Source of the DNA: Macrostomum lignano
Lineage: Eukaryota
Length of the DNA stretch: 64,000 bases
Assembly: GCA_002269645.1 (NCBI GenBank)
Contig: NIVC01003360.1
Location: forward strand, 1-64,000
Direction: 5' to 3'
Part shown: piece by piece, positions 639-47,515 of the stretch
How positions within the stretch are numbered: the stretch's first letter is position 1
How the letters are laid out: every line of letters begins with the position of its first letter
Position numbers and translations under genes: made by a program
The notes under the pieces: generated by a model
Told to the model about the DNA's origin: nothing
Database searches by the model: none
Seen by the model: the letters and a program-made list of their open reading frames with translations, nothing else

Positions 639-689
639 AATGAGTGCAGGTCTCCGACCGTCGCGCCTATTTAAATTATTTCTTTAAAA

Positions 690-1487
690 ATGGTAAAGGC
701 AAAACACGATAAGATATTTCAAATGATCCTTTTCTTTGTTTAGTAATTGGTGGTCGGGTAAAGGAAAAACACACTTTGTTTACGATTTATTAACAACAGA
801 TGGAATGCTAGACTATAATAATTTAATAATTTATACTAACAAACCTAGAATAAAATATTATGAATTTCTTAAACATGGATTAAAAAACAAATTAAAAAAA
901 GATGTCTTGTTTAGAATGTTAAGAGCATATGAGCAATATGAGGATGATGACGAACCGCGATTTAATCTAGCAGACATTGAGGATTTATGTAAAACAATGG
1001 CACAACAGCCAGAAAACATCACCGATCGCCCCGAAGGGTCGCGGACTTCGTCCGATCGAGCCCCAACTGTTAGAGTATCAACCCGATTAGCCTATGATCA
1101 AATTCCAAAACATGATAAAACACTAATTATTTTGATGATTGTATTAATGACGGTGATCAAGAATTACAAAAGGAAATTTTTGTTAGTGGTAGAGGAGATG
1201 GAATTGGAGCTTTTTATCTTACTCAATCCTTTAGAGAATTAGAATCGATTATAAAAAAGAATGCTAGCTGTTGTGTAATGTTTGATTTAGATAACTATGA
1301 TCTACAAAATATTCACGCTAGATTTAATCCCGGGTTGGATGCAAAACCATTTAAAAGTATGTGTAAAAAAATTTGGGATGATAGCCAATACAAACATATT
1401 TATATCAATCCGAGGTTAGAAAGGAAACATAGAATTTTAACAAATTTGATAAAAGAAGATAATGAGGAAGAAGAGGATCGTGCATAG
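690..1487 (+). pseudogene. A32/FtsK-like genome-packaging ATPase, three frameshifts
   Basis: ATG at 690 in AAAAATG context. Joined frames read LCLVIGGSGKGKTHF (Walker A), TLII(F)DDCIND (Walker B), FVSGRGDG.GAFYLTQSF (GRH/Q-like motif), then KNASCCVMFDLD. It merges ORF-track ORFs 736-1242 and 1278-1487. Confidence 0.85.
1025..1056. repeat. 30-nt double-hairpin element, in frame in the ATPase
   Basis: AT CGCCCC-GAA-GGGTCG CGGAC-TTC-GTCCG AT; encodes DRPEGSRTSS(D). Confidence 0.85.
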
Positions 1488-1566
1488 CACGCGTACCTTG
1501 GTACGATCGCCCCATAGGGTCGCGAACTTCGTTCGATCGTTCCTTCGGAACGCGGACTTCGTCGAT
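1476..1566. repeat. Tandem array of three double-hairpin elements at the ATPase stop
   Basis: gAT CGTGC-ATA-GCACG CGTACC-TT-GGTACG AT CGCCCC-ATA-GGGTCG CGAAC-TTC-GTTCG AT CGTTCC-TTC-GGAACG CGGAC-TTC-GTCG AT. Confidence 0.85.
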
Positions 1567-1583
1567 TAATTTCCACTATAAAA

Positions 1584-2369
1584 ATGACTACAAATTTAGA
1601 TACTATAAAACAATTGGTAGATCGAACTAATTCAAAATTTAGTACAACATTACAGTTTATAATGACAACCAGCGAGCAACGGATTCAATTGCGCGATCCA
1701 TTACAACTTGATCAAAGCCTAAGTTATCAAATAGGTTTAATACTATTTTCGGTTTTCAACATGCCTCAATTAATTAATGCAACAAATAATCAATTTAGAT
1801 ATTCTAAAGATTCCGGAGCCAATTGGACAACATTTAGCGTTAACCCAGGAGCGTATAGCTATACTGATTTGAATGCTTATATAGAAGGAGAATTAACATC
1901 TAACGGCGATTGGGTAGCAGGCGCGATTGTTATAGGTGTTGATTTACCGTCTGGCAGATTCACACTATCACTAGGATCCGGATATCAGGTTGATTTCACA
2001 ATTGCAAATTCACTCAGAACCATACTTGGATTTAATTCCCGAATAGTTACCACATCAAGCACCGGTGATACAGTTGGAAATATAGAGGGTGGAGTAAATA
2101 CAATTAATATAACAACCGACATTTCAAACGGTGGTTATATAACAGACGATAACGGAGTTTTGGTTCAACGTGGAATTATTTATTCAATCCCATTTCTTGC
2201 TGTTCCAATTGGAGAGAAAATGATTGTATCACCTCAAACCCCAATATATTACCCATTAAATCAATATAATGTTCAATCAATTTATATTAGGATTGTAGAT
2301 GAAAGCGATAGATTAATAAGTTTTGGTGGGCAGTCAATAACAGTGATTTTACGTATAAAACAGGTTTAG
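1584..2369 (+). CDS. Minor capsid protein (penton, single jelly-roll)
   Basis: 261-aa beta-rich ORF with LRTILGF, INITTDISNG.Y and PIYYPLNQYNVQSIYIRIVDESDRLISFGGQSITVILRIK. The last motif is the typical Polinton penton C-terminus (I.D...R.I.F.G..I...L). Confidence 0.8.
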   Translation: MTTNLDTIKQLVDRTNSKFSTTLQFIMTTSEQRIQLRDPLQLDQSLSYQIGLILFSVFNMPQLINATNNQFRYSKDSGANWTTFSVNPGAYSYTDLNAYIEGELTSNGDWVAGAIVIGVDLPSGRFTLSLGSGYQVDFTIANSLRTILGFNSRIVTTSSTGDTVGNIEGGVNTINITTDISNGGYITDDNGVLVQRGIIYSIPFLAVPIGEKMIVSPQTPIYYPLNQYNVQSIYIRIVDESDRLISFGGQSITVILRIKQV

Positions 2370-2370
2370 C

Positions 2371-2398
2371 CGAACCAAAGGTTCGAGGACTTTGTCCG
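2371..2398. repeat. Double-hairpin element immediately after the penton stop
   Basis: CGAACC-AAA-GGTTCG AGGAC-TTT-GTCCG, starting 2 nt after TAG. Confidence 0.8.
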
Positions 2399-2413
2399 TT
2401 TCCTATAGTAAAA

Positions 2414-2623
2414 ATGGGTAATCGAACAACATGTTCGCGTGCAAAGCACGATAATAATAATAATTTAATAAAAAAACAATCAGAAAAAGTTAAAAAAGCT
2501 GAAGATAATTACGAACTAGAACTAGCAAAATTAAGGCAGTTACAAGCTGATAAAATAAGAAAGGAATTGTTAAAACCCACACCTACGAAACTAACTAAAA
2601 CCAAGAGTTTTTCAGGAACATAA
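2414..2623 (+). CDS. Small basic coiled-coil viral protein, unknown function
   Basis: 69-aa Lys-rich ORF with the same CTATA...AAAATG start context as neighbouring viral genes; its stop abuts the protease start. Confidence 0.45.
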   Translation: MGNRTTCSRAKHDNNNNLIKKQSEKVKKAEDNYELELAKLRQLQADKIRKELLKPTPTKLTKTKSFSGT

Positions 2624-2624
2624 A

Positions 2625-3011
2625 ATGACCATGACGTGGGATGATTTTAAACAAAGATATGGAACGGACACAACAAGCAATATCGAATTAACAAATTGGG
2701 CGAGGCAGTTAAAAATAAAACCATTCAGATGTGTTATGCGAGATGAGATCAAAGACTTACCACAATATGGATCTTTCATTGTTAATATTGAAACAACAAA
2801 AGAAAACGGTGTTCATTGGTCAGCAGTTTATTCAAAACCAAAACTTGTTTATTTTTTTGATTCATACGCGCTTCCTCCGTTACAGGAAATAAAAGACAAA
2901 TTTAATCATACTAAAAATCGTTTATGTGGAGATCATCACGAACAGTTTCAAACCTTTGATAAAAGTTATTGCGGACAAGCAGCGTTATATTTTTATATCG
3001 ATTTCGAATGA
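2625..3011 (+). CDS. Adenain/Ulp1-like cysteine maturation protease
   Basis: Catalytic residues are in the expected order: NGVHW (His), YFFDSYA (Asp), FQ (oxyanion Gln), SYCGQ (Cys). Confidence 0.9.
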   Translation: MTMTWDDFKQRYGTDTTSNIELTNWARQLKIKPFRCVMRDEIKDLPQYGSFIVNIETTKENGVHWSAVYSKPKLVYFFDSYALPPLQEIKDKFNHTKNRLCGDHHEQFQTFDKSYCGQAALYFYIDFE

Positions 3012-3042
3012 AGCTCGTGTAAACCACAAAGTATTTAAGACT

Positions 3043-3074
3043 ATCATGCAAAGCATGCGAACCTAAGGTTCGAT
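3043..3074. repeat. Double-hairpin element (reverse orientation) between protease and fibre
   Basis: AT CATGC-AAA-GCATG CGAACC-TAA-GGTTCG AT. Confidence 0.8.
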
Positions 3075-3103
3075 TTTAGACTCTATAAAATAGACAGTAA
3101 AAA

Positions 3104-4978
3104 ATGATATTTTCTGGAACACCCTCATGGAACGGAACAACAAGTAGTGGTGGTGGTGGCACATCTGGTGGAATAAGTGTTACATTTGGAGATAATCGAT
3201 ATATTAATGAAGATGAAGGTTATAAAAAAAGTGAAGTTGATACTAAACTAAATTTGAAACGGAATGTTGCAGATTCCTATACCAAAACTGAAATCGATAC
3301 TTCATTAAATCTTAAAAGAGATATTAGCGATTCATATACAAAATCAGAGGTTGACACTGGGTTAAATTTAAAAAGAGATATAACTGATTCTTATTCTCGA
3401 ACTGATTCTGATTCGCGTTATGTTCAAGCCACCGCAACCGGAACTTTAGATATGGATAACAATCGAATTATAAATGTTGCAATTACAACGAATAACTCGG
3501 TAGTTGATAAGAACTATGTCGATAATCAGGTTGGTAGTCGTAACGGCAATATCAATATGAATAATTTTAAATTAACAAATTTATTATTTGGAACAGAGGC
3601 CACAGACTCGGTCAATTTAGGGCAGGTCAACGCTCGAGCTAATGTAACCGACGCCGATATTTTTGCCACGCCGCTTACATCAAATACTTCAAATCCAGAT
3701 GTTGTTCTTACAGCATCCGAAAATACCAACGATGCTTTTCGAGTTGGAGATGGAAGCCTTGCGACACAATGGTCACCAAATACCGGAACCACAACCAATA
3801 TGGAAATTCAATTTGAATTTTTAGGTTATAATCGAAGAATAAATGAATTAAGAATTACAGGCAGCGCAACTATTGATATTCCATCGGGATGGTCGGTTCG
3901 TGCAAAAAATGTTGCTACCGATGCATGGACGGTATTACGAACGTCGGGATCACCAATTCAAGCAACTTCATTTGCGTTAACTAATTTAACGGTTAATTTT
4001 TGGAAATATTATAGCGTTTTATTCCCAACTGGTGGCACCGCTACACAACCTATCGAGGTTCGTCTAATACAATTATTTGAACACCGAGTTGAAATTCAAG
4101 ATCTTAATTGGCCAAATGAAATACTATCTGCTACCCCGCGAGCGTACGTAGATCAGGTAGCAACTCCAACTTCAAATGGTAGAATGTCTGCCGGTGATAA
4201 AAATAAATTGGATAATATTCCCGCGATTGATGCCGCATTATTCGAGCCAGTAATTTGTAATTGGACTGGATATCAAAATCCAACAACCGCTGGAGATATA
4301 TATCCAGTTGGTTCTTTAATTGGCGACGCTTCTTATATCGATTATCAAAATGGAGCTAGAATTACTCGTGAAACTGGTGGAGTAAGTGGGGCATTACAAT
4401 TCAATTTCACACATTTTCAAAATATATCTGCGTCTTTCTATTTCCGAGTCGCTAATTCTACAGGAGATGGTGCAGATGCGGTTTGGTTTTATGCATATTG
4501 TCACGAACGCCCAACAAGTGAAGGTGGGACTGGATTAACAACCGACGCCGGATTGATAGTTTTTGCAAGTGAGTGGCATGATAAATTTGGCGTTGTATGG
4601 AGTAATAAAAAATCAGACGGATCAAGCCGCGCGGATGTTAATACTGACGCAGATCAAACGGTAGATTATGCAAATATTGATAACGGCGATTGGCATTTAT
4701 TTGAAATTAATATTTTAAATCAAAGGGTTTGGTACCGATTACAGTCATACAATGTTGCTGGTGATTCTTTTACCCTCATTGGACAGAACGTTTTCACATA
4801 TGATAGTGGAACTTGGGGAACTTTAGATAAATCTGGAACCCTTATGGGTTTTGGTGCTCGAACTGGAGGATCGGATGCTGCACATTTTATTCGTGGCGCA
4901 GCCGTTTGTGGTAGCACATCGTTTGGTTATGTTTTTCCTTCTACCGCTTATTTAGAAAAACCACCCGTACAAATCTAA
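3104..4978 (+). CDS. Fibre-like virion protein: tail-fibre repeats, discoidin/F5-8-like domain, C-terminal L-type (ConA-like) lectin-like domain
   Basis: Three 19-aa Y(T/K)K(S/T)E(V/I)DT.LNLKR(D/N)..DS repeats. Trimer-stalk motifs LDMDNNRIINV, DKNYVD and GRMSAGDKNKLDNI. DGSLATQWSP...WTVL discoidin-like segment. SASFYFRV...GADAVWFY...WHLFEI lectin-like segment. Confidence 0.65.
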   Translation: MIFSGTPSWNGTTSSGGGGTSGGISVTFGDNRYINEDEGYKKSEVDTKLNLKRNVADSYTKTEIDTSLNLKRDISDSYTKSEVDTGLNLKRDITDSYSRTDSDSRYVQATATGTLDMDNNRIINVAITTNNSVVDKNYVDNQVGSRNGNINMNNFKLTNLLFGTEATDSVNLGQVNARANVTDADIFATPLTSNTSNPDVVLTASENTNDAFRVGDGSLATQWSPNTGTTTNMEIQFEFLGYNRRINELRITGSATIDIPSGWSVRAKNVATDAWTVLRTSGSPIQATSFALTNLTVNFWKYYSVLFPTGGTATQPIEVRLIQLFEHRVEIQDLNWPNEILSATPRAYVDQVATPTSNGRMSAGDKNKLDNIPAIDAALFEPVICNWTGYQNPTTAGDIYPVGSLIGDASYIDYQNGARITRETGGVSGALQFNFTHFQNISASFYFRVANSTGDGADAVWFYAYCHERPTSEGGTGLTTDAGLIVFASEWHDKFGVVWSNKKSDGSSRADVNTDADQTVDYANIDNGDWHLFEINILNQRVWYRLQSYNVAGDSFTLIGQNVFTYDSGTWGTLDKSGTLMGFGARTGGSDAAHFIRGAAVCGSTSFGYVFPSTAYLEKPPVQI

Positions 4979-4993
4979 ATATTTATATATAAA

Positions 4994-5320
4994 ATGGCTT
5001 TTAGTAGAACTCCATCGATGCGGCAAAATAATGTTATTATTCCTATTCCTAAACAAGAATCAAATATAAAAACATTCAAATCTCATACCAAATTTTTATT
5101 TAGTACTGTAAATGTTCAGGATAACAAGAAGCTTCAAGAATTAATTAAGTTATTAAAAAATCATATTATACTTCAAGAGTTTTGGAAAATAGGATTTAAA
5201 TGGGAGAAAAAAGAAAGAATCACTCCAATACAATACCTATTGAGCTCGGGACAAATACCCAAAGAGCGCGGGGAATTCATTTTGGTGCTATTAAAAATAG
5301 ACGAAAATGTCGGTGTCTGA
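4994..5320 (+). CDS. Hypothetical viral protein
   Basis: 108-aa ORF with TATATAAAATG start context, inside the viral gene cluster. Confidence 0.5.
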   Translation: MAFSRTPSMRQNNVIIPIPKQESNIKTFKSHTKFLFSTVNVQDNKKLQELIKLLKNHIILQEFWKIGFKWEKKERITPIQYLLSSGQIPKERGEFILVLLKIDENVGV

Positions 5321-5903
5321 AGCAGATAAAAGGGAACGTGATCATTTTGACCGAACCGAAGGTTCGCGTGCTATGCACGACCAACGCAAGGGTCACATGT
5401 TGAGTAATGTTGATCGAATAAATTATGATTATGATTTATATACTAAAAAAGTAAGAAGAATTTCAAATCATATCAGAAATATGGATTTTTTCAATATTGG
5501 ATTTGGAAGCTTATCGATGTTATGTGTAATTGTTTTAGGTATTTTACAATCATTTCCAACTCTTAATTTATCTCAATTATTTTTAGGTATTTCAATTGGC
5601 TCAATATCAGGTTTTGAATTGATCAGGAACTTATCAATACTTTTAGCAATTAAATTATATCTTAAAAAAAGAAAGGAAAAATATAAATCTTTAAGAGATG
5701 TTGCAAAACAATATAAAAATCAATTATATTTATATGTGCAAAAAATATTGGATGACGGAGAGATAACTATTCATGAATTATCAACCGCGGTTGAGTTATA
5801 TGAAAAATATTTAAAAGATAGAAATAGAATTTTGGATGTTGAAACTTTTACCGATATGGAATTGAAGAATTGCGTTTGGACAAACCCAAAGCTCCTCCGA
5901 TAG
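5307..5903 (+). CDS. Two-TM plus helical protein typical of Polintons; probable frameshift near 5866, true stop possibly 5989
   Basis: Two hydrophobic segments followed by KEKYKSLRDVAKQYKNQL...KILDDGEITIHEL...EKY, resembling the K..KH..I..LA...AL.D..IS..EF pattern I recall from Polinton accessory proteins. An alternative frame continues ELRLDKPKAPP...VELQVV*. Confidence 0.55.
   Translation: MSVSEADKRERDHFDRTEGSRAMHDQRKGHMLSNVDRINYDYDLYTKKVRRISNHIRNMDFFNIGFGSLSMLCVIVLGILQSFPTLNLSQLFLGISIGSISGFELIRNLSILLAIKLYLKKRKEKYKSLRDVAKQYKNQLYLYVQKILDDGEITIHELSTAVELYEKYLKDRNRILDVETFTDMELKNCVWTNPKLLR
5352..5379. repeat. Double-hairpin element, in frame in the 2-TM ORF
   Basis: CGAACC-GAA-GGTTCG CGTGC-TAT-GCACG; encodes DRTEGSRAMH(D). 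Confidence 0.8.
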
Positions 5904-5956
5904 AAACTATTGAATACAAACCGGAAACTATTGCTACCGGGTTACAAAGTCCGCGG

Positions 5957-6469
5957 TCAGGAAGTACTGTAGAACTTCAGGTTGTTTAGTTTATTTAATG
6001 CATACGTTATATATTCTTCCCAAAGTGGTAACTCTCTTCTGATCCTAGGTTTGGATTTTTTATCAATACATAAAAATTCCAATGACTTTTTCAGTAACAT
6101 TTCGTTAGGTATGTTACCTATCCTTATAAACTTTGTATTCTCTCGAATAAGAAAATTGAAATAATATCCAACTAAAATTAAAATCCTTTCGGAGTCTTTC
6201 GAACTTAATCCCTTTCCTTTATTTAAATGGAAAAAGTTATTATATAAATAAACATTATTTCCCGGAATTAAAATTGGATCGGAAATGTCTCTTGTAAGAT
6301 TTCTTAAAATTGTGTTTTTAAAATAGTAATATGAATTTTCAATCTTTTTTATTTTTTCAAATTGATATATTTTAGAACATGAATAGCACATATGATATAT
6401 ATCTCCGTTTGCTGTTTGCCCTCTGTGCATAGTCACATTACATTTATTACAAACATAAATGTCTTTCAT
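5957..6469 (-). CDS. Hypothetical protein with N-terminal CxxC...CxxC zinc ribbon
   Basis: CNKC...CYSC at the N-terminus; AAAAAATG start context. Confidence 0.5.
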   Translation of the reverse strand: MKDIYVCNKCNVTMHRGQTANGDIYHMCYSCSKIYQFEKIKKIENSYYYFKNTILRNLTRDISDPILIPGNNVYLYNNFFHLNKGKGLSSKDSERILILVGYYFNFLIRENTKFIRIGNIPNEMLLKKSLEFLCIDKKSKPRIRRELPLWEEYITYALNKLNNLKFYSTS

Positions 6470-6495
6470 TTTTTTGTTATTTTTTTAGATTAAAA

Positions 6496-6879
6496 ATGGA
6501 AAGTTGGTTCAAAACCGATTCTAATGTGATTAATTATCTCACACCCAATATGTTGGAGAATAAAGAATATAATATTGTATGTTTGAGACAGGTTAAATTT
6601 ATTGGACTTCAATCGATATTTTTACAATTAGATGGGCAAAAAATTTTATGTCTAAGCGGAGATGATGTTAAAAATTTTCCTGTTTTAGTTATTAATAAAC
6701 CTAAAGCGTTTGTTATGAAATACAGCAACGAGGGTGGATTGCAATTTAAACTAAAACAACCAAAAAATAAAAAGAGTGACAGGACTGTAAAATTGGCTTC
6801 GGTTTGGGAGGATGACCCCCCGAATAAGTTTAAATTTTTTATAAGAAAAAATGGATACGATAAAAATCCTTATCACTAA
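6496..6879 (+). CDS. Hypothetical viral protein
   Basis: 127-aa ORF, TAAAAATG start, divergent from the zinc-ribbon ORF. Confidence 0.5.
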   Translation: MESWFKTDSNVINYLTPNMLENKEYNIVCLRQVKFIGLQSIFLQLDGQKILCLSGDDVKNFPVLVINKPKAFVMKYSNEGGLQFKLKQPKNKKSDRTVKLASVWEDDPPNKFKFFIRKNGYDKNPYH

Positions 6880-7231
6880 AGAGCGTGAACTTAATGATAT
6901 TAATAAAAAAATAAATATAATTATATCTCAGAAATATCATGAGTATGGGGACGATATGTTTCCCATCCGATATGAGATAGATAAAAGAAAACGTTTTTTA
7001 AGACAAGATATTGTTTATGCTGAAATAGTAATTGAAATTGAAATAGATAGATTGGTTAGAAAAATAAAAAAACTTAGGAAAAAAATAAAGGATTGTTTAA
7101 GTTACCCTGACGACTGCGAGGAAAATTGGCCTTCAATATTATATGAAATCGAAATGGATATTATGCTTAAACAATTACATGCTTTAGTTTTTTTCCGCCC
7201 CGAAGGGTCGCGGATTTTATCCGATAAGTAA
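6851..7231 (+). CDS. Hypothetical coiled-coil viral protein
   Basis: 126-aa charged ORF converging on PolB; its last codons (RPEGSRILSDK) are encoded by a double-hairpin element. Confidence 0.5.
   Translation: MDTIKILITKERELNDINKKINIIISQKYHEYGDDMFPIRYEIDKRKRFLRQDIVYAEIVIEIEIDRLVRKIKKLRKKIKDCLSYPDDCEENWPSILYEIEMDIMLKQLHALVFFRPEGSRILSDK
7196..7225. repeat. Double-hairpin element at the convergent ends of ORF 6851 and PolB
   Basis: CGCCCC-GAA-GGGTCG CGGAT-TTT-ATCCG AT; the PolB TAA stop (7217-7219) lies in arm B. Confidence 0.8.
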
Positions 7232-10200
7232 TTTTTCTGTTAATCTCTTCCAGTTATTCAAGACTTTTTCCTTATTTAATTTTTTAAGTTCTTTTGGAAA
7301 TGTTGAATAATAATTATCTATATCTTTTTCATATTCTAGAAATGTATTATATTCACAATCACATTCGGATTCACAATCACAATCGTAATAATAATTATTT
7401 ATTGCCGCTTTGTATTCATTATATTTACTTATTATATCTTCTTTTTGTTTTTTATCTTTTATCATATTTTTTATCTCTTCTTTTAAACCATATGGATATG
7501 TTTTAATTTTATCATCTAAATATCTTTTATCATCAAATGGACTTAATGTTTTTTTATCTGTCTCGATGACAAACATCTGATGCTTATCTGAATTTAATCG
7601 ATATTGTGGAGCATGATAATTTTCAATTGTATTAAGGTAATCTAAAAGTACGTTTTTATAATCATCAAATGTTATCTTTTTTACTGCTGCTCTTGATACC
7701 CCTTTTATTTTTTTTACCTCTCCCTCCTGTCCTAAAACCTTAAATGCATAGCATTTTGATCTTATTGCTATAAACTCGGTTATGATTTTGCTATTTAATT
7801 CATCTTTCATTTTAAGTACAACTTTTTTATTTTGATCTGATTTTAAAGGATGGTTATCCGGATAGTCGGAGGTATCCAATGTATCCTTAATTTTTTCCAT
7901 ATCTTTATAGACATCGAACCTTTGGTTCGCGGACTCCGTCCGATCCTCTGTTTCAACCTTAAATACCAAACTGTCGGTGTCTGCATATATTGGATAGTTA
8001 TCTGGCCATGTTTTATTTATAACATCATAATAATATTCATACATTACCAGCTTTGCATAATCTAAAACAACCATTCCAATAAATATTGGTTTAAGAAATT
8101 TTGTTGTTTTATTTCTCATATGAATACCCATAAAGTTATCATCAAATTTTATAAAGTCTTTAAAGTTAGGTTTTGAGAAATATTTCTTTGCTTTATCAAT
8201 ATCCTTTTCTAAATGGAATTGGGTTCTATCTCTAATATTTTCAACCGTTTTTCCATAAAAAGCATTATTCATTAATTTCCAATAATCTTTCTCAAAATTT
8301 GTTTTTGACATCTGTCTCTGATTTGAATTAAAGTCAATATATTTAGCTAACCAATCTTCCTCAATAAACGATATTGTTCGATGTACTTTAGACACTTTTA
8401 ATCCCTGTTTTTCATAAAATTGTAGAAGCTTATAATGCACTACATAGTTTTTCTTATCATGTAAATTTAATATTAATTTTTTTGTTGCTAGATGTTTTGC
8501 ATTATCTACTTTAAGATAATCTTTTTGTGTTTGTGATAAATCATCTTCATTAACTGAACAATGCTCTGGAGCTAAAGGATATTTATATGTTTTTGCTTTT
8601 GCTTCCCGAGTATATTGCAAATCCACCTCTACAATACAGCCCCTTCCTTCGGGAATATTTTTGTAATAATCGGGGTCATCTTCCCATTGGAAATCAGCTA
8701 TTGGTAATTTTTGTTTCATACAACCACCGTATAAATTGTTTGCATCTAGATATAATACATATGATGATTTTTCTTTTTTATTATAATTTGGTAGATATTT
8801 ATTATTTACTTTAGTATATCTATCTCCTAGTACACCCGAGAATCCGCCGCGAATTCCTCTCTCAATCATTAACAACATATCATGATCAGTTAGTAAATCA
8901 ATCTCAACATCTGTGTATTTCAAACCGCAAGCCCATGTTAATCCGGGTGCACTGAAACAATAAGCGGGATCAATTTTAAAGTTCTCATATGTATGATTCC
9001 TAAAGTTTTCAAATGCATCAGCTAATAGGAGAACATCTGCTTTAAGATATAGATTATGATAATCTTTAAATGTTTTACAATTAAAATATTTCCATACTTT
9101 TTGAGCGTGTTCATAATCCGATTCACTTATATTTGTTTGTGATAATGTTGAATAAAACTTTTCTATGGGTGGTAATTCAGTATGAAAAAATACGTCTTCA
9201 GATGTTACATATTCATATGGATAGATGCCCTTACGAGTTAATAGCATTAGTTCTTCCTCGGATAGTTTTTCCTTTTTGAAACGATTCAATATTATTGGAA
9301 AGTTTTTCTTTACTATTTCTAAATCCCACGGTTTTGGAACAAGTGATGAAACAACATTTGCTAAAGATGTTGATAAGAATCTCAAGGAATCTAGAAAAAC
9401 TAGATGGGAGTATTTCTTACCATATGTTATTGATATATAATTTTCTGATGTTTTAGGTAATATATTTATTTCATATTCGTCCTTTCCTAAATGAAGCAAT
9501 TCTCGAACTAGGAAATGAAAATCATATCCGGAACCATTATGAAAAAATACTGGTATTTCCTTACATCCTTTTCCTTCTTTTGCGTTACATGATCTACATG
9601 CTGCCCCTCGATAAATTCCCGTTAGATGACAATGTTCTCGTATCTTATTTTTCTTACTTAAATATCTTTTGCACATATAACAATTTGTTGCATTTTTATA
9701 ATTGTCTCTATCCTTATCTGTCATAATAATATTTTTTGATAATTTATCATATTGATTTTGAATATATTCAAATACATTTACTAATGATTCTGCCATGTGC
9801 TTAGCTGCATCTTTACCGTGGTAAGTAATCATCCTTGATTTAAATATATGATCGGCTACGGAGTGTACATATATACAATAACTATTAGGAAACTGTTGTG
9901 CTAATTTTTTTGTGCATTCACCATCAGATAATGTCTGTGATTCTTTTAAGGGAACATTTGTTGCTTCAAAATCAGCATATATTACTATTGGTTTTTTAAT
10001 TGCCATATAATGTTGTTGGAACATTAGGGTTGCATCTTCAGATGCTGGCATTACAGCATTAGTAAATTTGTGATCTAAACAAAATCGTTGATGATTTTTA
10101 AGAGCTGTTTCATCCTTTTTAAATGTGAAACAATTTCTACATAGTGGATATCTATTTCTATTTTCTCTTAAAAAGGAACTAATGTCCTTTATGTATATAT

Positions 10201-10954
10201 AATGTGTTTCATTTTCACGCTGCATGTACAAAAGGTCGATTTGATCTGGTGCTGTTATATCTGTTGCTGGCTTAACAAGATAACACCTTTTCTTATACCA
10301 TTCTGGATCGACCTGTTGGGTCGCGGACTCCGTCCGATCGGTTGAAATTTCTTCTAGATCTTTTGGTTCTTCAATTGTAAACACATTAATATTTAAACCA
10401 TTCATTTTTTCAATCTTATATATATCATCTATTGCTACTGGGTATGATATGTTTTTCATTATTATTTCATTCTCATATTGTTTATAATTATATATTTTAT
10501 TAGTGTGTGATTCTACTTGATTGTGATATTTATGAATTAATAAACACCATAATAAACATTTATTATCTTTATTGTTTGGATTTATGATCATTGGTGATTT
10601 AAATTTGAGCTTCATATGTGATCGTCCTTTAAGAATTTCTATGGGTGCAATCTTTACTATTGCTGAATTACAGGATACAAATATAAACCCGGATCCGTTT
10701 TCTGTCATCTTATCTATCCATTCATCAAACTCAGCTTCTATTTGATTAAATTGATTATTGTAATTTCCCATTGATAGTAGTGTTTTATATGATTCTTGTG
10801 AAAAGTTATTTATTACTTCAATTTCTGAATTTGCATTAAGAATATTTGGTTTTTTAAATTCTGTTTCAACTTCTATTTTATACTTAATTGGCTGTCGTTT
10901 GTTATTTGGCCTTATAGTATAATTGTTTAATATGGTCTTTAATTTATCTTTCAT
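7217..10954 (-). CDS. polB: Protein-primed family B DNA polymerase with N-terminal OTU-like region and endonuclease VII-like zinc domain
   Basis: Uninterrupted 1245 aa. ExoI YADFE, ExoII HNGSGYDFHF, ExoIII YLKADVLLLAD. Pol motifs YLDANNLYG, KLMNNAFYGK, YADTDS. CYMC...REHCHLTGIYRGAACRSCN is EndoVII-like. N-terminal GSG...INPNNKDNKCLLWC is typical of this pPolB group. Confidence 0.97.
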   Translation of the reverse strand: MKDKLKTILNNYTIRPNNKRQPIKYKIEVETEFKKPNILNANSEIEVINNFSQESYKTLLSMGNYNNQFNQIEAEFDEWIDKMTENGSGFIFVSCNSAIVKIAPIEILKGRSHMKLKFKSPMIINPNNKDNKCLLWCLLIHKYHNQVESHTNKIYNYKQYENEIIMKNISYPVAIDDIYKIEKMNGLNINVFTIEEPKDLEEISTDRTESATQQVDPEWYKKRCYLVKPATDITAPDQIDLLYMQRENETHYIYIKDISSFLRENRNRYPLCRNCFTFKKDETALKNHQRFCLDHKFTNAVMPASEDATLMFQQHYMAIKKPIVIYADFEATNVPLKESQTLSDGECTKKLAQQFPNSYCIYVHSVADHIFKSRMITYHGKDAAKHMAESLVNVFEYIQNQYDKLSKNIIMTDKDRDNYKNATNCYMCKRYLSKKNKIREHCHLTGIYRGAACRSCNAKEGKGCKEIPVFFHNGSGYDFHFLVRELLHLGKDEYEINILPKTSENYISITYGKKYSHLVFLDSLRFLSTSLANVVSSLVPKPWDLEIVKKNFPIILNRFKKEKLSEEELMLLTRKGIYPYEYVTSEDVFFHTELPPIEKFYSTLSQTNISESDYEHAQKVWKYFNCKTFKDYHNLYLKADVLLLADAFENFRNHTYENFKIDPAYCFSAPGLTWACGLKYTDVEIDLLTDHDMLLMIERGIRGGFSGVLGDRYTKVNNKYLPNYNKKEKSSYVLYLDANNLYGGCMKQKLPIADFQWEDDPDYYKNIPEGRGCIVEVDLQYTREAKAKTYKYPLAPEHCSVNEDDLSQTQKDYLKVDNAKHLATKKLILNLHDKKNYVVHYKLLQFYEKQGLKVSKVHRTISFIEEDWLAKYIDFNSNQRQMSKTNFEKDYWKLMNNAFYGKTVENIRDRTQFHLEKDIDKAKKYFSKPNFKDFIKFDDNFMGIHMRNKTTKFLKPIFIGMVVLDYAKLVMYEYYYDVINKTWPDNYPIYADTDSLVFKVETEDRTESANQRFDVYKDMEKIKDTLDTSDYPDNHPLKSDQNKKVVLKMKDELNSKIITEFIAIRSKCYAFKVLGQEGEVKKIKGVSRAAVKKITFDDYKNVLLDYLNTIENYHAPQYRLNSDKHQMFVIETDKKTLSPFDDKRYLDDKIKTYPYGLKEEIKNMIKDKKQKEDIISKYNEYKAAINNYYYDCDCESECDCEYNTFLEYEKDIDNYYSTFPKELKKLNKEKVLNNWKRLTEKLLIG
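7913..7944. repeat. Double-hairpin element, in frame in PolB near motif C
   Basis: AT CGAACC-TTT-GGTTCG CGGAC-TCC-GTCCG AT; read on the minus strand as DRTESANQRF(D). Confidence 0.85.
10307..10338. repeat. Double-hairpin element, in frame in the PolB N-terminal region
   Basis: AT CGACCT-GTT-GGGTCG CGGAC-TCC-GTCCG AT; read on the minus strand as DRTESATQQV(D). Confidence 0.85.
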
Positions 10955-11449
10955 TTGTTTAAAATATTCTTTATAATTTGTATTTATATCCTATATACTA
11001 AAAATGAGTTGTCTGTGGGTATGCGATAGATTTCAGAAAAATTGGCTCAACCGATTTTCTTCAAACTTGCACCATTCGATCAGAAATTTTCCTGGGACTG
11101 TACATGCATCTTGGCTAAGAAATTGCTCAATTCTAAAGGGATTAAATATTCGAAAAACATGCTTTTTTGCAAAGGTCAAGCAAAATTTTCGACTTGAAAT
11201 GCATTGTAAGAATGCTAGAGAAAAACCTGACTGACTGAATTTTGATTCTGATAAAGATTGCATCACAACAAGTTGAAAACAGTGTCGAAGAAATGCACAC
11301 ACGACTTGATTTAAATTGCGTAACCAATATTGCTAACTTAAATTGAGACTGATACTGGCTGACTGAGAAATTGATTATGTCATAACTTTTACTTTAATTG
11401 ACTTGCTGTAAGAATTGAATTATAAGGGCCACAATTCATAGAAAAGAGA

Positions 11450-11515
11450 TAGCCTAGATACGAACAGACTGGACTGCCAACGTAGCGACCTGGGTTCGAA
11501 TCTTAGTAGAGCAAA
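11450..11515 (+). mobile_element. tRNA-derived SINE head fragment
   Basis: GATAGCCTAG A-box-like sequence and GGGTTCGAATC B-box; no complete cloverleaf. Confidence 0.4.
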
Positions 11516-11569
11516 ATAATTTTTTTATTTAATCACCTTGAAAACACGAAACTGCTAAACATAAAAAAG

Positions 11570-12260
11570 CACAATGTCAAACATAAAAGAGGCACCATGT
11601 CAAACATTACATGGTCACCATGTAAAACATATACGTGACTCTATGTCAAACATTACATGGTCACCATGTAAAACATATACGTGACTCTATGTCAAACATA
11701 AAAGAGCCACCATGTAAAACGTAAAAGAGCCACCATGAAGAACATTAAAGAGCCACCATGCCAAACATAAAAGAGCCACCATGTAAAATATTAAAGAGCC
11801 ACCATGGCAAACATAAAAGAGCCACTATGTCGAACATTAAAGAGCTAGCATGTCTAACATTAAAGAGCCACCATGTCGAACATTAAAGAGACACCATTTC
11901 GAACATAAAAGAGCCACTATTTCAAACGTAAAAGAGCCACAATGTAGAATATTAAAGAGCCACTATGTTGAACATTAAAAAGCCACCGTGTCAAACACTA
12001 AAGAGCCACTATTTCGAACATTAAAGAGCCACCATGTCGAATATTAAAGAGCCACCATGTAGAATATTAAAGAGCCACTATGTCAAACATTAAAGAGCCA
12101 CTATGTCAAACGTAAAAGTGACTTTATGTCAAACATATAGGTGTTTTTATGTCAAACATTAAAGAGCCACCATTTCGAACATTAAAGAGCCACCATGTCA
12201 AACATAAGAGAGCCACCATGTCAAGCATAAAATAGACACAATTTCAAACGTAAAAGAATT
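11570..12260 (+). repeat. 23-bp minisatellite AAAGAGCCACCATGTCAAACATT, block 1
   Basis: Period of 23 measured between GAGCC anchors; copies are degenerate. Confidence 0.9.
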
Positions 12261-12344
12261 GCCAGCCAATGCCAATTTTAAGTCATGCCAATTTTAAAGG
12301 AGCCACTATAAAGCTAAGGAAATTTTCGCACTAGCTACTTATTG

Positions 12345-12535
12345 TCTGGTGGATGCTTGCTATTTGGAGATACTTGCTATCTGGGGGGTGCTTGCTATCT
12401 GGGGGATGCTTGCTATCTGAGGGTGCTTGCTATCTGGGGGATGCTTGCTATCTGGGGGATGCTTGCTATCTGGGGGGGTACTTGCTATCTGGGGGATGTT
12501 TTCTCTCTGGGTGATGCTTGCTGTCTTGGGATGAT
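12345..12535 (+). repeat. 18-bp minisatellite GATGCTTGCTATCTGGGG, block 1
   Basis: Period 18; gives the spurious MLAIWG ORFs. Confidence 0.9.
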
Positions 12536-12599
12536 TTCTTTTTGGATTGCACTTTATTTGAGCAGTTTCTCGGTTTTCTTTGTATAGGTTTTTTTTGTA

Positions 12600-13450
12600 T
12601 GTCGAATATTAAACAGCCACTATGTCAAACATAAAAGAGCCACCATGTCAAACATATACGTGACTCCATCTCAAACAATAAAGAGCCACTATGTCAAACA
12701 TAAAAGAGCTACCATGTCAGACATAAAAGAGCTACCATGTCAAATATACAAAAGCCATCATGTCAAACATAAAACAGCCACATATACGTGACTTAATGTC
12801 AAACCTTAAGGAGCCTCCATGTCGAACATTAAAGAGCCACCATGTAAAATATAAAAGAGCTACCATGTAAAATATAAAAGAGCCACCATATCAAACATAA
12901 AAGAGCCACCATTTTAAACATATACGTGACTCCATGTCAAACATTAAAGCGCCATCATGTCAAACATATATGTGACTGCATGTCAAACATAGAAGAGCCA
13001 CCATGTCAAACATAAAAGAGCCACCATGGCGAACATTAAAGAGCCACCATGTCAAACATAGAAGAGACACCATGTCAAACATAAACAGCCACGATGTAAA
13101 ATTTAAAAGAGCTACCACGTAAAATATAAAAGAGCCATCATGTCAAACATTTACGTGACTCAGTGTCAAACATTAAAGAGCCACCATGTCGAACATTAAA
13201 GAGCCACCATGTTAAACATAAAAGAGCCACTATGCCGAACATAAAAGAGCCACCATGTCAAACAACTAAGCCACCATGTCAAACAATGAAGAGACACCAT
13301 GTCAAACATAGAAGAGCCACCATGTCAAACATAACAGAGACAACATTTCAAACGTAAAAGGGCCACCATGGTAAACATAGAAGAGCCACTATGTCAACAT
13401 TAAAGAGCCACCTTTTTAAACATAAAAGAGACACCGTTTCAAACATAAAA
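12600..13450 (+). repeat. 23-bp minisatellite, block 2
   Basis: Same unit as 11570-12260. Confidence 0.9.
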
Positions 13451-13509
13451 GAAGTGTCATGCCAAACAAAATGGAGCCACTATAAAGCTAAGGAAATTGT
13501 TGCACTAGC

Positions 13510-13945
13510 TACTTTCTCTGGTGGATGCTTGTTATTTAAGGATGGAAACTTGCTATCAAGGGGATGCTTGCTATCGGAAGGATGCTTGCTACTGGGGTAA
13601 CTTGCTATTGGGAGATGCTTGCTCTTGGGGGGTAGAGGGTACTTGCTATCTAAGAGGGGGTTGCTAGATATCTATAAGGTCTCTTTGTATCCAGGTTAAT
13701 GCTTGCTATCTGGGGTTGCTTGCGGTCTGGGGGATTGCTTGCTATCTGGGGGATGCTTGCTATCTGGGGTTGCTTGCAGTCTAGGGGATGCTTACTATCT
13801 GGGGTCTGGGGGATGCTTGCTATCTTGGGGTTGCTTGCTATCGGGGGGATGCTTGCTATCTGGGGGATGCTTGCAGTTTGGAGGATTTTGCTATTTGGGG
13901 ATCGATGCTTGAATGCTGTCTGAGGATGCTTGCTGTCTTGGGATG
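13510..13945 (+). repeat. 18-bp minisatellite, block 2
   Basis: Same unit as 12345-12535 and preceded by the same junction GGAGCCACTATAAAGCTAAGGAAATT. Confidence 0.9.
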
Positions 13946-14063
13946 TTTTGTTTTTAGAGGGAATGTCTGTTGTTTTTTATGAAGGCTTTATTTCGCTGTC
14001 TATTTGTTATTTGTAAAGAACAAGGATTCTATCCAGATGTCCCCCATCGGGGGGCGAAGATTG

Positions 14064-14264
14064 CTAGTCTATATCTATACCTATTACTTCAGCTCCATTT
14101 TGTCCTTGTGGTTGGGGGTTATCAATATCATTTAATTGTCTTTCTAAACGTATCTCATTTTCTGCCCTAACTCTAGCTTCTATATTAGCTCTTTCTAATT
14201 CCAATTGAGCTATTAATTGCGCTCTAAGTTCAGGGTTGTCGATTTGAGCTAAAATTGCTTCCAT
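14064..14264 (-). CDS. Small acidic coiled-coil viral protein
   Basis: 66 aa, CTATAAAATG start context, internal IDNP duplication. Confidence 0.45.
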   Translation of the reverse strand: MEAILAQIDNPELRAQLIAQLELERANIEARVRAENEIRLERQLNDIDNPQPQGQNGAEVIGIDID

Positions 14265-14348
14265 TTTATAGAATAAAATTTATATAATGTTTGAATTATT
14301 GATTTTTTAATTTTGTGTTTTTGGTGTCCAGACCCTCCCCCCAGGAGC

Positions 14349-15308
14349 CTATTCGAGATCTGCTTTTGGTAATAGCAATCCGTTTCCCATAACGTTTGAA
14401 TTTAAGAAAATTCCTGAACCTGCTTTTGGTCGCATTTCGAGATATAATCCGCTTCCATCATGTTTTTCAATGATGTTAAAATCTTTTCCTAACTTATTAA
14501 AAATTTTCTGAACAGCTGGTCTAAAATTGGATCCAATATTGTCAAAAAATCCTTTAGCTTTCTCACCCGTTTTTTCTAAAGTTTGGCCAAATTCGTGTAG
14601 TTTATCTGCGACAACTCCACTTCCTTGGGTCGTTCCTTTTAAAATTAAACCTTTTCCAGCTGCTAATTTAGCTTCTGCATTTCTTTTTTGCTCTGCTGTT
14701 GCTGAACTACTATTAATGGTATCTATAAGTTTTTGTTTGAATTGTGCGTCCTGTGTTATTTGCTGTCTTTGAAATTCGGCCTCTCTTTTGGCTTTTTCAT
14801 CCGCGGCTTTTTTGTCATTTACTGCTTTTGCAATTCCAGCCGCTCCTCCAGCGACTCCTCCAGCTGCTCCAATTCCTGCAAAAATTATTGGGAGCAAAGT
14901 TGCGAGGGGTAATATACCCCCTTCTTTTGCTTTTAATTCTCCTAACTGTTTTATGTTATCATGAATTCTTTTTCCTGCTAAACCAGCTGCTCCAGCTGCC
15001 CCAAGTCCTAAAAGAATTGGTAAAATGGGTAACAACCCGCCGTCCTTTTTAGTGTGAGTCTCCAATAAAAATTTTACATCGGAGTCTGTCAGCCTATAAT
15101 TTCTACCATGATTCTTAAAGGATATTGGTCTTCCTTCTTGTGCATATTTCGCAGCAAGTTTAAATGTATTGATGTCGTAGTCAAATTTTTTGCCTAAGCG
15201 ATCCAATCTTTTTAACATTGCGTGACTATGTTTATTATCGTCTAGATTTAAAGTATCTACAATTTCTCCTATAAAATATAGCCGTTTTTCGTCATTAACT
15301 GAGTCCAT
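14349..15308 (-). CDS. Virion core/maturation polyprotein with two adenovirus pX-like hydrophobic segments and GxG-L(Y/F)L repeats
   Basis: DGG-LLPILPILLGLGAAG and EGG-ILPLATLLPIIFAGIGAAGGVAGGAAGIAKAVND resemble HAdV pX (RGG-ILPLLIPLIAAAIGAVPG). The C-terminus carries GSGLYL, GSGIFL and GNGLLL repeats. Confidence 0.65.
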   Translation of the reverse strand: MDSVNDEKRLYFIGEIVDTLNLDDNKHSHAMLKRLDRLGKKFDYDINTFKLAAKYAQEGRPISFKNHGRNYRLTDSDVKFLLETHTKKDGGLLPILPILLGLGAAGAAGLAGKRIHDNIKQLGELKAKEGGILPLATLLPIIFAGIGAAGGVAGGAAGIAKAVNDKKAADEKAKREAEFQRQQITQDAQFKQKLIDTINSSSATAEQKRNAEAKLAAGKGLILKGTTQGSGVVADKLHEFGQTLEKTGEKAKGFFDNIGSNFRPAVQKIFNKLGKDFNIIEKHDGSGLYLEMRPKAGSGIFLNSNVMGNGLLLPKADLE

Positions 15309-15318
15309 TTTTATATTG

Positions 15319-15729
15319 TTAAAATTTCTTTAATCCTTTTCCGCCTTTAATTGTGGTTAACATTTTATTAAAATCCTGAATATCTTTATTACTTATTGGT
15401 GTGCTTTTCGTGGGGGTTTCTGTTGGTTGTGCGGCTTGAGTTGTTTCCTGCGCTAGTTTCAAATCTTTTATTGCTTTTATTTGTGAGAGGGTGTCGTTAA
15501 ATTCTCTCAATTTCTTTAGTTCTTCTACTGCCCTCGCTGCTTCGATTCCGCCCTTTACAGCGTTTGTTATAGAACCTGCTGCAGAGCCTGCTTGGCCTAT
15601 AAGACCCATATTGTCTTTAACGAAATTCGCTGCTGTACCAACCACATCAAAAAGACCCTCACCTCGGTATTCAACTGGGTCTCCTACCTGCAATTCGTTC
15701 AGATTTTGCATATGTGTAACGTGTGTCAT
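15319..15729 (-). CDS. Putative membrane-active core protein (pVI-like organisation)
   Basis: Likely start is MTHVTH at 15729 (AAAAAATG context). YRGE-GLFDVVGTAANFVKDNMGLIG forms an amphipathic helix; the C-terminus is IKGG-KGLKKF. Confidence 0.55.
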   Translation of the reverse strand: MTHVTHMQNLNELQVGDPVEYRGEGLFDVVGTAANFVKDNMGLIGQAGSAAGSITNAVKGGIEAARAVEELKKLREFNDTLSQIKAIKDLKLAQETTQAAQPTETPTKSTPISNKDIQDFNKMLTTIKGGKGLKKF

Positions 15730-15887
15730 TTTTTGTTCTATTTTTAGTAACAGAAAAATTAAGTTGCAGACACTAAAGAAAAGGGTAGTGTGCAAGCATC
15801 TCGAGCGGTTTTATTTTATAGCTCTTTTTTACTCTTTTTTGTATAGAAAATAAAGAAGACGCAAACACAAAAGATTCTCTATCCAAA

Positions 15888-15919
15888 AATGAACCTATGG
15901 TTCGCGGGCTGTGCCCGAT
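15888..15919. repeat. Double-hairpin element upstream of the core-gene cluster
   Basis: A TGAACC-TAT-GGTTCG CGGGC-TGT-GCCCG AT; a further hairpin TGCTCC-GCT-GGAGCA follows at ~15933-15947. Confidence 0.75.
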
Positions 15920-16172
15920 GGCACAAATGGCCTGCTCCGCTGGAGCACAATGGACGCTTTTTATTCGATGAATGGCCATTTTTCTCTCTGTCCTCGGTGC
16001 ATTGTGTCTATAACAGCACATGAATTTTTCTCATAGCTTAGAAAAAATCATGTATACACTAAAAGAGTTTGGTGCACACACACACATGATTTTTTCTAAG
16101 CTATGAGAAAAATTCATGTATACACTAAAAAGATTGTCAGTTTAATAGTTATGGAAATAGCACGCAAATTAT

Positions 16173-17060: not shown

Positions 17061-17533
17061 GATAATACGTTTGTTAGTTCTTGTAAAAGACAGATATTAG
17101 GAGTTGTGCATAAATAAGAGACTATTTGCTGTGGCTAGTTTTTTAGATTTCATCATTCTTATACACACAATTAAAGCTTGGGGTGGAGTGCTGAAAATAA
17201 TAAAAGCGCTTTTCATGAGTAAGCAACTCACCTTCCTGTTGTAGCCAGTTTGAGTCTGAGGTTTGCGCTTCGGTAAATGATGAGTATAATAGAAACCCCG
17301 AATTCCCGCGTTAGTCATTATACTGTCTGCGACCCTTTGGGGTGATCATGCAAAGTTTTTCTTTTTGTGAGCTGCTTTAAGATAGTTAAACACTGTTCCT
17401 TTTCTATGACTCAGTTTGGGTCAGACTGTGCCCCTTCGCGCCTGCGGCGCGTGCGAGGGTTTATAGAGAATTTGAAGTGTTAGAAGTGTTGGGGTGTGTT
17501 GGAAGTGTTGGAAGTGTTGGAAGTGTTGGGTAG

Positions 17534-17811
17534 AGTAGTAGTAGGGAAAAAGACGCTTCTAGATCAGACCTTTTTTAATGGTCGTTTATAAGGTTCCAGA
17601 GGGGGGACACGAGGGGTGTGATAAGATGAGTTGGGGATGGGTTATATTGATTTTTGGTATTAAGGGGTGTTGTGGGTGATTATGGGTGATTAGATGTGTT
17701 AAGGGTGTTTAGATGTGTTTTTTTATTTACCCCCCGTGTCCCCCCTCTAGACCCTTAAAACGGCTGTTAAAAAAGTGCTCTGGGTCTGGAAGCGTCTTTT
17801 TCCCTACTACT
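17534..17811. repeat. Palindromic Polinton terminus (inverted ~85-bp arms starting AGTAGTAGGGAAAAAGACGCTTC)
   Basis: 17534-~17620 is an imperfect reverse complement of ~17725-17811. It is preceded by short GAAGTGTTG repeats (~17473-17530). The next six bases, GCCAGG, are the candidate target-site duplication. Confidence 0.7.
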
Positions 17812-47390: not shown

Positions 47391-47515
47391 ATATTTTTAC
47401 CCTAAACTTCAGGCCTAGATTTTGCACTCTCATCCTAGTCACTATATCTAAACCGCAAGGCACTGTACATTCGATCTAAGCTGAGTTAGTCTGGCACCAA
47501 TATTTCTCGCTGAAG

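Follow-up and report, generated by a model that had tools for sequence, protein, structure and literature searches.

We analysed 64,000 nucleotides of Macrostomum lignano DNA, which we call the window (positions 1 to 64,000 of contig NIVC01003360.1, forward strand, assembly GCA_002269645.1). Its first part holds genes of a Polinton, a virus-like transposon, including a protein-primed family B DNA polymerase, an A32-like packaging ATPase, and a candidate cysteine protease (Table 1). Scattered between and within these genes are small GC-rich units, each of which consists of two abutting hairpins. A first-pass annotation of the window, made from the letters alone, listed 11 of these units and suggested that they are micro-mobile or cis-acting elements that spread during viral replication. 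We found that the units are real and that no known Polinton feature accounts for them.

Double hairpins in Polinton-derived DNA

A unit is present at each of the 11 listed positions, as judged from sequence reading, a descriptor scan and a covariance model. The descriptor called for two abutting hairpins with stems of 5–6 bp, loops of 3–4 nt, no more than one mismatch, and three or more G:C pairs in each stem. (A double-hairpin scan without the G:C requirement gave many AT-rich chance matches, in viral and host DNA alike, and was set aside.) The descriptor matched 11 units in positions 1–18000, as compared to 0.02 on average, and never more than 1, in 200 dinucleotide-preserving shuffles. In the host DNA (18001–64000), it matched none, with 0.33 expected. 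Neither shuffled sequence nor the host sequence of the window has anything like this density of units; a similar density there would, according to the first-pass annotation, have counted against its claim. The scan also turned up a unit that was not on the original list (2421–2452). The third unit of a three-unit array (1536–1566), which has lost one base, escapes the scan.

We built a covariance model from an alignment of 12 units. The model scored the 11 full units at 38.9–48.4 bits (E <= 3e-8) and gave no match above noise in the host part of the window, in keeping with the earlier statement that the 46 kb of host DNA contain no full unit. With the descriptor and the model combined, the first 17.4 kb of the window contain 11 full units, one truncated unit, and one weak relic. 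Two degenerate relics had been suggested before. The one near 14038 is a single CCCCC/GGGGG hairpin that the model does not recognise; the one near 17330 may be a degenerate relic (17324–17347), but its score is weak. No known RNA family from Rfam matched anywhere in the window.

Table 1. Hairpin units and Polinton genes in the window. Scores are from the covariance model, and folds are computed minimum free energies of single-stranded DNA. ORF, open reading frame; aa, amino acids.
Feature	Position	Strand	Score (bits)	Fold (kcal/mol)	Context
Unit	1025..1056	+	48.4 (E 1e-10)	-7.3	In the packaging-ATPase frame, read as RPEGSRTSSD; matches the descriptor
Unit, first of array	1477..1507	-	39.9 (9.9 on +)	-7.6	ATPase stop codon in its loop; first stem 5 bp, one loop 4 nt
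Unit, second of array	1506..1537	+	46.1	-6.5	Intergenic
Unit, third of array	1536..1566	+	13.6 (E 0.11)		One base lost from second stem; just upstream of the next gene's TATAAAA...ATG
Unit	2369..2400	+	39	-7.1	Begins 1 nt past the stop of ORF 1584–2369; without AT flanks
Unit	2421..2452	+	38.9	-9.4	In frame, 3 codons into ORF 2414–2623; perfect pairing
Unit	3043..3074	-	45.4	-8.5	Intergenic, ~35 nt past the stop of the protease-like gene
Unit	5350..5381	+	43.8	-9.6	32 nt past the stop of ORF 4994–5320; within the first 25 codons of ORF 5307–5903; perfect pairing
Unit	7194..7225	+	40.7		Convergent 3' ends of ORF 6851–7231 (+) and the polymerase gene (-); both frames terminate in or just past it
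Unit	7913..7944	+	45.6		In the polymerase gene; opposite strand reads DRTESANQRF
Unit	10307..10338	+	43.8		In the polymerase gene, read as DRTESATQQV
Unit	15888..15919	+	40.7		In the putative second Polinton-derived segment, between two (-) genes; T for C at start; two more GC hairpins follow at 15910–15947
Possible degenerate relic, weak	17324..17347	-	11.2 (E 0.45)
Protein-primed family B DNA polymerase gene	7217..10954	-			Intact frame, 1245 codons; contains two units
A32-like packaging ATPase gene	736..1487	+			One frameshift; contains one unit and terminates in a second
Conserved Polinton gene, 261 aa	1584..2369	+			Capsid-gene block; adjoins the ATPase gene as in relatives
Adenain/Ulp1-like cysteine protease candidate	2625..3011	+			Homologous to L002 16909–17349 and L003 12897–13244
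Two ORFs, 319 and 158 aa	14349..15795	-			tblastn against L001, E 3e-9 and 1.5e-6

The arms of the stems covary, as had been claimed. In the 12-unit alignment, 96.9% of cells are paired, versus 80.4% in column shuffles (the observed value was reached in 0 of 500) and just 23–42% if the pairing partners are slid. Seven of the 11 pairs show compensatory (both-sided) changes, in 20 cells. These pairing statistics and the covariance model agree with the earlier proposal that structure is kept. Also, the computed minimum-energy fold of the single strand is the double hairpin for every unit (-6.5 to -9.6 kcal/mol). The units are 41–68% GC, and the surrounding DNA is 27–39% GC.

Most of the units follow the architecture that was first described, which is AT, a 6-bp stem with CG ends and a 3-nt loop, a 5-bp stem with CG ends and a 3-nt loop, and AT again. 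The exceptions are the units at 1477–1507, 2369–2400, and 15888–15919; C.T mismatches in stem 1 of three units; and two units (1477–1507 and 3043–3074) that are reversed relative to the other ten. (The bias in orientation, with 10 of 12 units pointing the same way, is marginal, P = 0.04.) The ends of the units form a short inverted repeat, ATCG...CGAT, of only 2–4 nt. AT or GAT/ATC is found on both sides of most units, and this palindromic GATC context leaves the boundary ambiguous; the unit at 5350–5381 has AC(C) on both sides instead. In the array at 1476–1566, the three units are arranged head to tail, and neighbors have the AT(C) junctions in common. Hairpin modules have been recombined: CGCCCC-GAA-GGGTCG combines with CGGAC... 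at 1027 and with CGGAT... at 7196, and the module CGGAC-TCC-GTCCG is found at both 7915 and 10309.

Judging from homology, the unit-bearing stretch is Polinton-derived DNA in an animal genome, because the contigs that contain homologues of its polymerase have the Polinton gene set (the polymerase beside double jelly-roll capsid, rve integrase, phospholipase, and A32-type ATPase genes), and one homologous element lies within a 463-kb contig that has a C-type lectin gene. The polymerase has 247 homologues, many of them in animal assemblies and several of them named coral and insect proteins; the best is 46% identical by BLASTP (46–49% in the multiple alignment). An Endonuclease VII-like domain (PF02945) is inserted at residues 420–471. 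A structural model of residues 300–1165 has a mean predicted local distance difference test score (pLDDT) of 89, and its best matches by fold comparison are to phi29 DNA polymerase (E 3e-17, TM 0.65–0.68). A sequence-profile search of solved structures found no polymerase, whereas fold comparison did. The C-terminal tail of the polymerase (~85 residues) is rich in Cys and Tyr and is missing from ten homologues, and the frame ends inside a hairpin unit.

As for the other genes, the ATPase is homologous to the ATPases of three related elements (L003, L246, and L248), and in comparison with those of L003 and L248 its homologous blocks are split over two reading frames. The conserved gene at 1584–2369 matches L002 22077–22805 (tblastn, E 4e-22) and also L003. 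The protease candidate had no match in Pfam. The homologues of the two ORFs at 14349–15795 flank the capsid gene of L001, but in the window these ORFs abut, with no capsid gene between them; their arrangement points to a second, partial or rearranged Polinton-derived segment. Searching the window with the rve integrases and with the double jelly-roll capsid genes of L001 and L002 gave no tblastn match. The element is only partly inside the window and runs past its start, so an integrase gene may be located beyond it. The Polinton-derived stretch is joined to nuclear-type satellite and host DNA, not to a mitochondrial genome.

Units within genes and at gene ends

Three units lie deep in conserved reading frames: 1025–1056 in the ATPase gene, and 7913–7944 and 10307–10338 in the polymerase gene, both on the strand opposite to the gene. 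Two other units (2421–2452 and 5350–5381) fall in the first 25 codons of small ORFs. The remaining units are between genes or at gene ends, and two of them (1477–1507 and 7194–7225) supply or overlap a stop codon.

Alignments of the polymerase indicate that the units are insertions. The peptide encoded by 7913–7944 begins 9 residues after the DTDS motif and corresponds to a clean 10-column gap in all ten of the closest polymerases. In the window the core has Asp codons both before and after it, versus a single Asp in the homologues. The comparison of empty and filled sites, which the first-pass annotation had recommended, favors insertion at this site. The other polymerase unit, 10307–10338, lies within a 21-residue stretch that is unique to the window (alignment columns 425–445, ten homologues). 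Only two segments of the polymerase model have pLDDT <50, and one of them (fragment residues 707–712) is inside the inserted peptide, between the strands that bear the DTDS motif and the next helix. The predicted structure thus reads as if the insertion at 7913–7944 added a disordered loop. For the ATPase unit (1025–1056), an empty site could not be established, as the variable linker could not be aligned.

Every in-gene copy adds exactly 30 nt, which is consistent with the earlier claim that the units preserve the frame. All of the in-gene copies are read in the same frame relative to the unit because of the Asp codons that flank them in frame: the codon after each of the six is GAT or GAC, and three of them also have GAT in front. 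We considered this constant frame as a signal of selection, but the flanks explain it (P about 0.09). (In the unit-bearing genes, 67% of GAT triplets on the sense strand are in frame.) Since the in-gene insertions are multiples of three, the units were probably gained while the genes were under selection. The units also make core Polinton proteins vary in length without a shift of frame.

Related elements and the rest of the window

A related element, L002, has 20 GC-rich hairpins instead of the 2.2 expected. All 20 are in the 14.4-kb element and none are in its 9.1-kb flank. The stems are not those of the window's units (for instance, CTGCC/GGCAG). L246, which shares its assembly and its gene order with L002, is 96.2% identical to it over 10 kb, and between these sisters we found about 12 discrete GC-hairpin insertions that are only in L002 and one that is only in L246. 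Eight clean insertions within genes have lengths of 30, 33, 36, 33, 30, 36, 27, and 33 nt. These are all multiples of 3, which has a probability of 1.5e-4 by chance. An intergenic insertion is 50 nt. Most of the insertions lie between direct repeats of 3–4 nt (AAT, AAC, TTT, GAAT), and the length of the repeat ranges from 0 to 7 nt. The segment that is inserted in the protease of L002 is missing from the window and from L003, and because these outgroups lack the segment, the polarity is that of a gain in L002. The sequence comparisons suggest that the gain of insertions in these relatives was recent.

L002 also has a terminal non-coding region (9100–9660) that is crowded with GC hairpins. The adjacent small gene (9583–9984) has an N-terminal extension of ~50 residues that is made of GC hairpins, and its counterpart in L246 is without the extension.

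A third hairpin family occurs in L396, from a hydrothermal-vent metagenome. Here a 24-nt insertion with a TAA repeat lies inside the integrase gene, and it is missing from L243 (88% DNA identity there) and from three other integrases. So, as the first-pass annotation's proposal of mobility would lead one to expect, related Polintons have hairpin families that differ by presence or absence between near-identical sisters and that are accompanied by short, target-like direct repeats.

A pattern scan of metagenomes, with at least 120 loci, gave one relevant match. L096, a 1-kb fragment with 35% G+C, has a perfect unit of the window's own family, and the unit adjoins an ORF that is homologous to the phospholipase-type genes of L001, L002, L246, and L370. 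It is this Polinton context, as read from the sequence, that would make the match convincing. Among the matches listed, the other 119 are chance or conserved bacterial genes; L122 proved to be a bacterial gene, and L044 belongs to a longer eukaryotic repeat that is unrelated. Four pattern scans of IMG/VR either came back empty or matched GC-rich phage contigs by chance alone, and there was no window-type unit in 32 Polinton-like loci (426 kb).

Some excess of GC hairpins was seen in about 4 of 12 close relatives. L001, L003, L243, L244, L247, L248, and L249 have none. Among IMG/VR contigs with a related polymerase, 4 of 26 show an excess, yet of other kinds of hairpins. Two Polinton-like contigs in IMG/VR, L384 (1558–15762) and L389, have 22-nt perfect palindromes with covarying arms, mostly at gene ends, and eight of them form a cluster at L384 11575–11934. 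These palindromes are a different hairpin family, which looks more like a gene-end or origin signal.

The rest of the window has repeats of other kinds. Directly past the start of the polymerase gene are tandem arrays (11557–13942) with a 23-bp unit (11557–12257 and 12599–13452) and an 18-bp unit (12345–12530 and 13699–13942). These may be subterminal, as is the ~60-bp array that adjoins L246's terminal repeat (8930–9440). The sequence at 16018–16119 is an inverted repeat with perfect 36-nt arms around a 30-nt spacer; it is AT-rich and unrelated to the GC units. At 17537–17811, ~275 bp lie between 27-nt inverted repeats (96% complementary) with a second pair nested inside, which gives this region the look of a miniature inverted-repeat transposable element (MITE). 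A satellite (18875–36561) starts ~1.5 kb past the last Polinton-derived sequence and has 97 copies that are 99% identical, with a period of 183 bp (also scored as 365 bp). Host-type ORFs at 41794–43315 have poly-Gln tracts as well as a SANT/Myb-like segment, and a search with the SANT-like exon found no homologues. Most of the long, spurious ORFs of the host DNA stem from minisatellites at 45588–49363 and 58026–58585, which have units of 21, 25, 21, and 16 bp and up to 86 copies.

Proposed origin of the units, alternatives, and known systems

We propose, as the probable explanation, that the units are copies of a tiny, selfish, structure-dependent DNA that inserts into A/T-rich sites in Polintons and that spreads as the Polinton replicates. 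The element would be a 27–28-nt core, with two abutting GC-rich hairpins, plus a duplicated target of 2–4 nt (usually AT within GATC), for a net gain of 30 nt. Copies would survive wherever the damage is slight, which means between genes, at the ends of genes, or within genes as a 10-residue loop. We infer that the spread is at the DNA level, during replication of the element as a virus, and we suggest an enzyme and a timing in the same spirit. Protein-primed synthesis with strand displacement would expose single strands, and the GC stems could fold there. The polymerase might then switch templates at the folded hairpin, guided by microhomology of a few bases, or a structure-specific nuclease might make a staggered cut, with the Endonuclease VII-like domain of the polymerase as a candidate. 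The Endonuclease VII-like domain would not be sufficient, because relatives without units have the domain too. And because the units are missing from the flanking host DNA, the mobilising activity would act on viral rather than chromosomal DNA.

A more general version is possible, and we put it forward tentatively. Polintons and adintovirus-like elements might carry their own hyperparasites, in the form of GC hairpin modules of 21–33 nt that are mobilised only in replicating viral genomes, by the machinery of the virus (the protein-primed polymerase with its Endonuclease VII-like domain), and that repeatedly add loops of 7–12 residues to core proteins (the polymerase, the integrase, the protease, and structural proteins). 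If so, they would be a nuclear-virus counterpart of mitochondrial GC clusters, and their movement could be traced purely by comparing sequences, via dated insertions in the many sister copies of a single host genome.

Several observations weigh against a selfish, mobile DNA. In the family to which the window's units belong, empty sites show up at the protein level only, among homologues that share 49% identity at most. The boundary of the element could be either 27 + 3 or 28 + 2. Precise loss of a palindrome between short repeats could mimic a gain; the polarity rests on outgroups. Of the 11 units in positions 1–11000, five are in the 3.4% of this region that is non-coding (P = 2e-5), which fits a role at gene ends too. 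The match in L096 could, taken alone, be due to chance, with about 0.5 perfect pairings expected among at least 120 loci. A small cluster of L002-type hairpins at L246 8340–8410 lies ~500 bp outside the tandem terminal repeats, in what is either element or host DNA. The host DNA that was sampled is limited to 46 kb in the window (of which 17.7 kb is one satellite), ~9 kb by L002, and 8 kb by L246. Finally, relatives with the same Endonuclease VII-like polymerase domain carry no units.

The main rival is that the units are cis-acting signals at gene boundaries, such as hairpins for transcript 3' ends or termination, or insulators, and are kept for their function. It is known that hairpins define transcript ends in giant viruses (the "hairpin rule" of Mimivirus). 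Such a role would fit with the 8 or 9 of 12 units that lie within ~60 nt downstream of a stop codon, with several of them directly between a stop codon and the next gene's TATAAAA...ATG and one at a convergent pair, and also with the preference of the 22-nt palindromes of L384 and L389 for gene ends. However, three units are deep in essential frames, where two run antisense to the polymerase gene, and about half of the genes are without a unit. Relatives with the same gene order lack units, and the insertions in L002 are mostly in genes and are missing from its 96%-identical sister. Also, purifying selection against in-gene insertions would give the same bias towards boundaries. A gene-end signal explains the bias in position but not the in-gene copies, the absence of units in relatives, or the polymorphism between sisters, and we consider it rather unlikely as the origin of the units. 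Some of the units at gene ends may have been co-opted.

We also considered that the units might be ultra-short MITE-like elements that are moved in trans by a cut-and-paste transposase from the host nucleus or from another transposon. The flanking repeats of the related families are mostly 3 nt (AAT, TAA, TTT, AAC) and the unit ends form a short inverted repeat, as this would predict, and MITEs have colonised a giant virus genome (PMC4495683). But a nuclear transposase should scatter copies in the host, and there are none in the flanks we examined. At 21–33 nt, the hairpins are far below the usual size of MITEs, the length of the flanking repeat varies from 0 to 7 nt, and different Polinton lineages carry unrelated hairpin sequences. 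We know of no autonomous element that matches. This origin seems improbable.

It is more doubtful still that the units are binding sites or origin-like palindromes that a viral protein recognizes as double-stranded sequence. The units are palindromic with constant CG ends, and similar hairpins are dense in the terminal non-coding region of L002. Such recognition seems inconsistent with arms that covary instead of keeping one sequence, with in-gene copies at non-conserved positions, and with close relatives that lack units entirely. Chance, low complexity, or an assembly artefact, for which there is just the general risk in judging hairpins by eye, can be dismissed given the excess over shuffles, the E-values from the model, the polymerase frame that is kept across two units, and the same phenomenon in independent assemblies and metagenomes.

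Small selfish hairpin elements of mitochondria and of some bacteria are a finding that goes back decades. What is new is a hairpin element of the mitochondrial type in a different replicon, a virus-like transposon of an animal, and the joint occurrence in Polintons of conserved pairing, target-like repeats, tandem arrays, shuffling of modules, and presence or absence between sisters. The literature on Polinton-like viruses describes terminal palindromes, and in a search that did not cover subscription journals we came across no account of hairpin micro-elements dispersed through Polintons, Mavericks, or adintoviruses; with the same limit, the first-pass annotation's view that these elements had not been described in Polintons holds. 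As a practical matter, annotators should be aware that a GC-rich island in an AT-rich viral gene is not necessarily a conserved motif. Scans of eukaryotic virus collections for an excess of hairpins, regardless of family, will probably reveal more families. And transposable elements inside virus genomes have rarely been documented (PMC4495683).

Compared to known systems, the units resemble the transcript-end hairpins of giant viruses, bacterial repetitive extragenic palindromic (REP) elements, and intrinsic terminators in that all are short palindromes concentrated at gene ends. In contrast, the units are also inside essential genes, are in both orientations, are missing from close relatives, and vary between sisters. 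Like the MITEs of Pandoravirus (PMC4495683), they are non-autonomous mobile DNA, in our interpretation, in the genome of a eukaryotic DNA virus. Pandoravirus MITEs are conventional transposon derivatives of several hundred bp, are related to a known transposase family, and are shared with the host genome, whereas the units are 10 times smaller and are missing from the flanking host DNA. Set against the hallmarks of MITEs, the units have inverted ends of only 2–4 nt, flanking repeats that vary in length (0 to 7 nt in the related families), no partner element that we could identify, and no copies in the flanking host DNA.

The palindromic elements of Rickettsia are bacterial and are roughly 100–150 bp. 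In 2000, Ogata et al. reportedly found them in frame in coding genes, where they are translated as an extra surface peptide. They are like the units in being selfish palindromes that insert in frame, which we take as an analogy and not as membership. They differ in being larger by an order of magnitude and in lacking both the two-mini-hairpin design and the contrast between GC-rich element and AT-rich surroundings.

The closest parallels are mitochondrial, and the likeness noted by the first-pass annotation agrees with the published descriptions (PMC4478555, PMC2800124). The GC clusters of yeast mitochondria have flanking repeats of AG or ACT, changes that are biased towards loops, variation between strains, and merging or shuffling; their mechanism is unresolved, and an endonuclease supplied in trans has been proposed (PMC4478555). 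Like the units, these clusters (such as GC42) are short GC-rich hairpins in AT-rich DNA with stems that are kept, close relatives differ in how many they have and where, and their modules shuffle; their short flanking repeats have clear counterparts in the related Polinton families and putative ones in the window. Unlike the units, which are 27–28 nt and are in a nuclear-integrated, virus-like transposon of an animal, they are mitochondrial and 42 nt. Also, at least a quarter of the window's units are in coding frames and are apparently translated, and the sequences are unrelated.

The hairpin elements of sponge (RHE) and Allomyces mitochondria are scattered among close relatives and are occasionally in frame in protein genes, where they are thought to stay in the transcript, and an RNA route was suggested for the double-hairpin elements of Allomyces (PMC2800124). 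These elements share with the units a design of two or more hairpins, a scattered distribution among relatives, and insertions that do not shift the frame. They differ from the units in being mitochondrial, and those of sponges lie for the most part between genes or within rRNA genes, with many of them AT-rich or longer. As for the RNA route suggested for Allomyces, nothing in the window's units points to RNA.

By analogy, then, the units seem to work like the mitochondrial hairpin elements, which are the closest known kind, without being members of those families. Each host genome has many Polinton copies of graded divergence, so that insertion sites, target preference, rate, and polarity can be read from alignments. 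Polintons thus offer a new route into the old question of how hairpin elements move.

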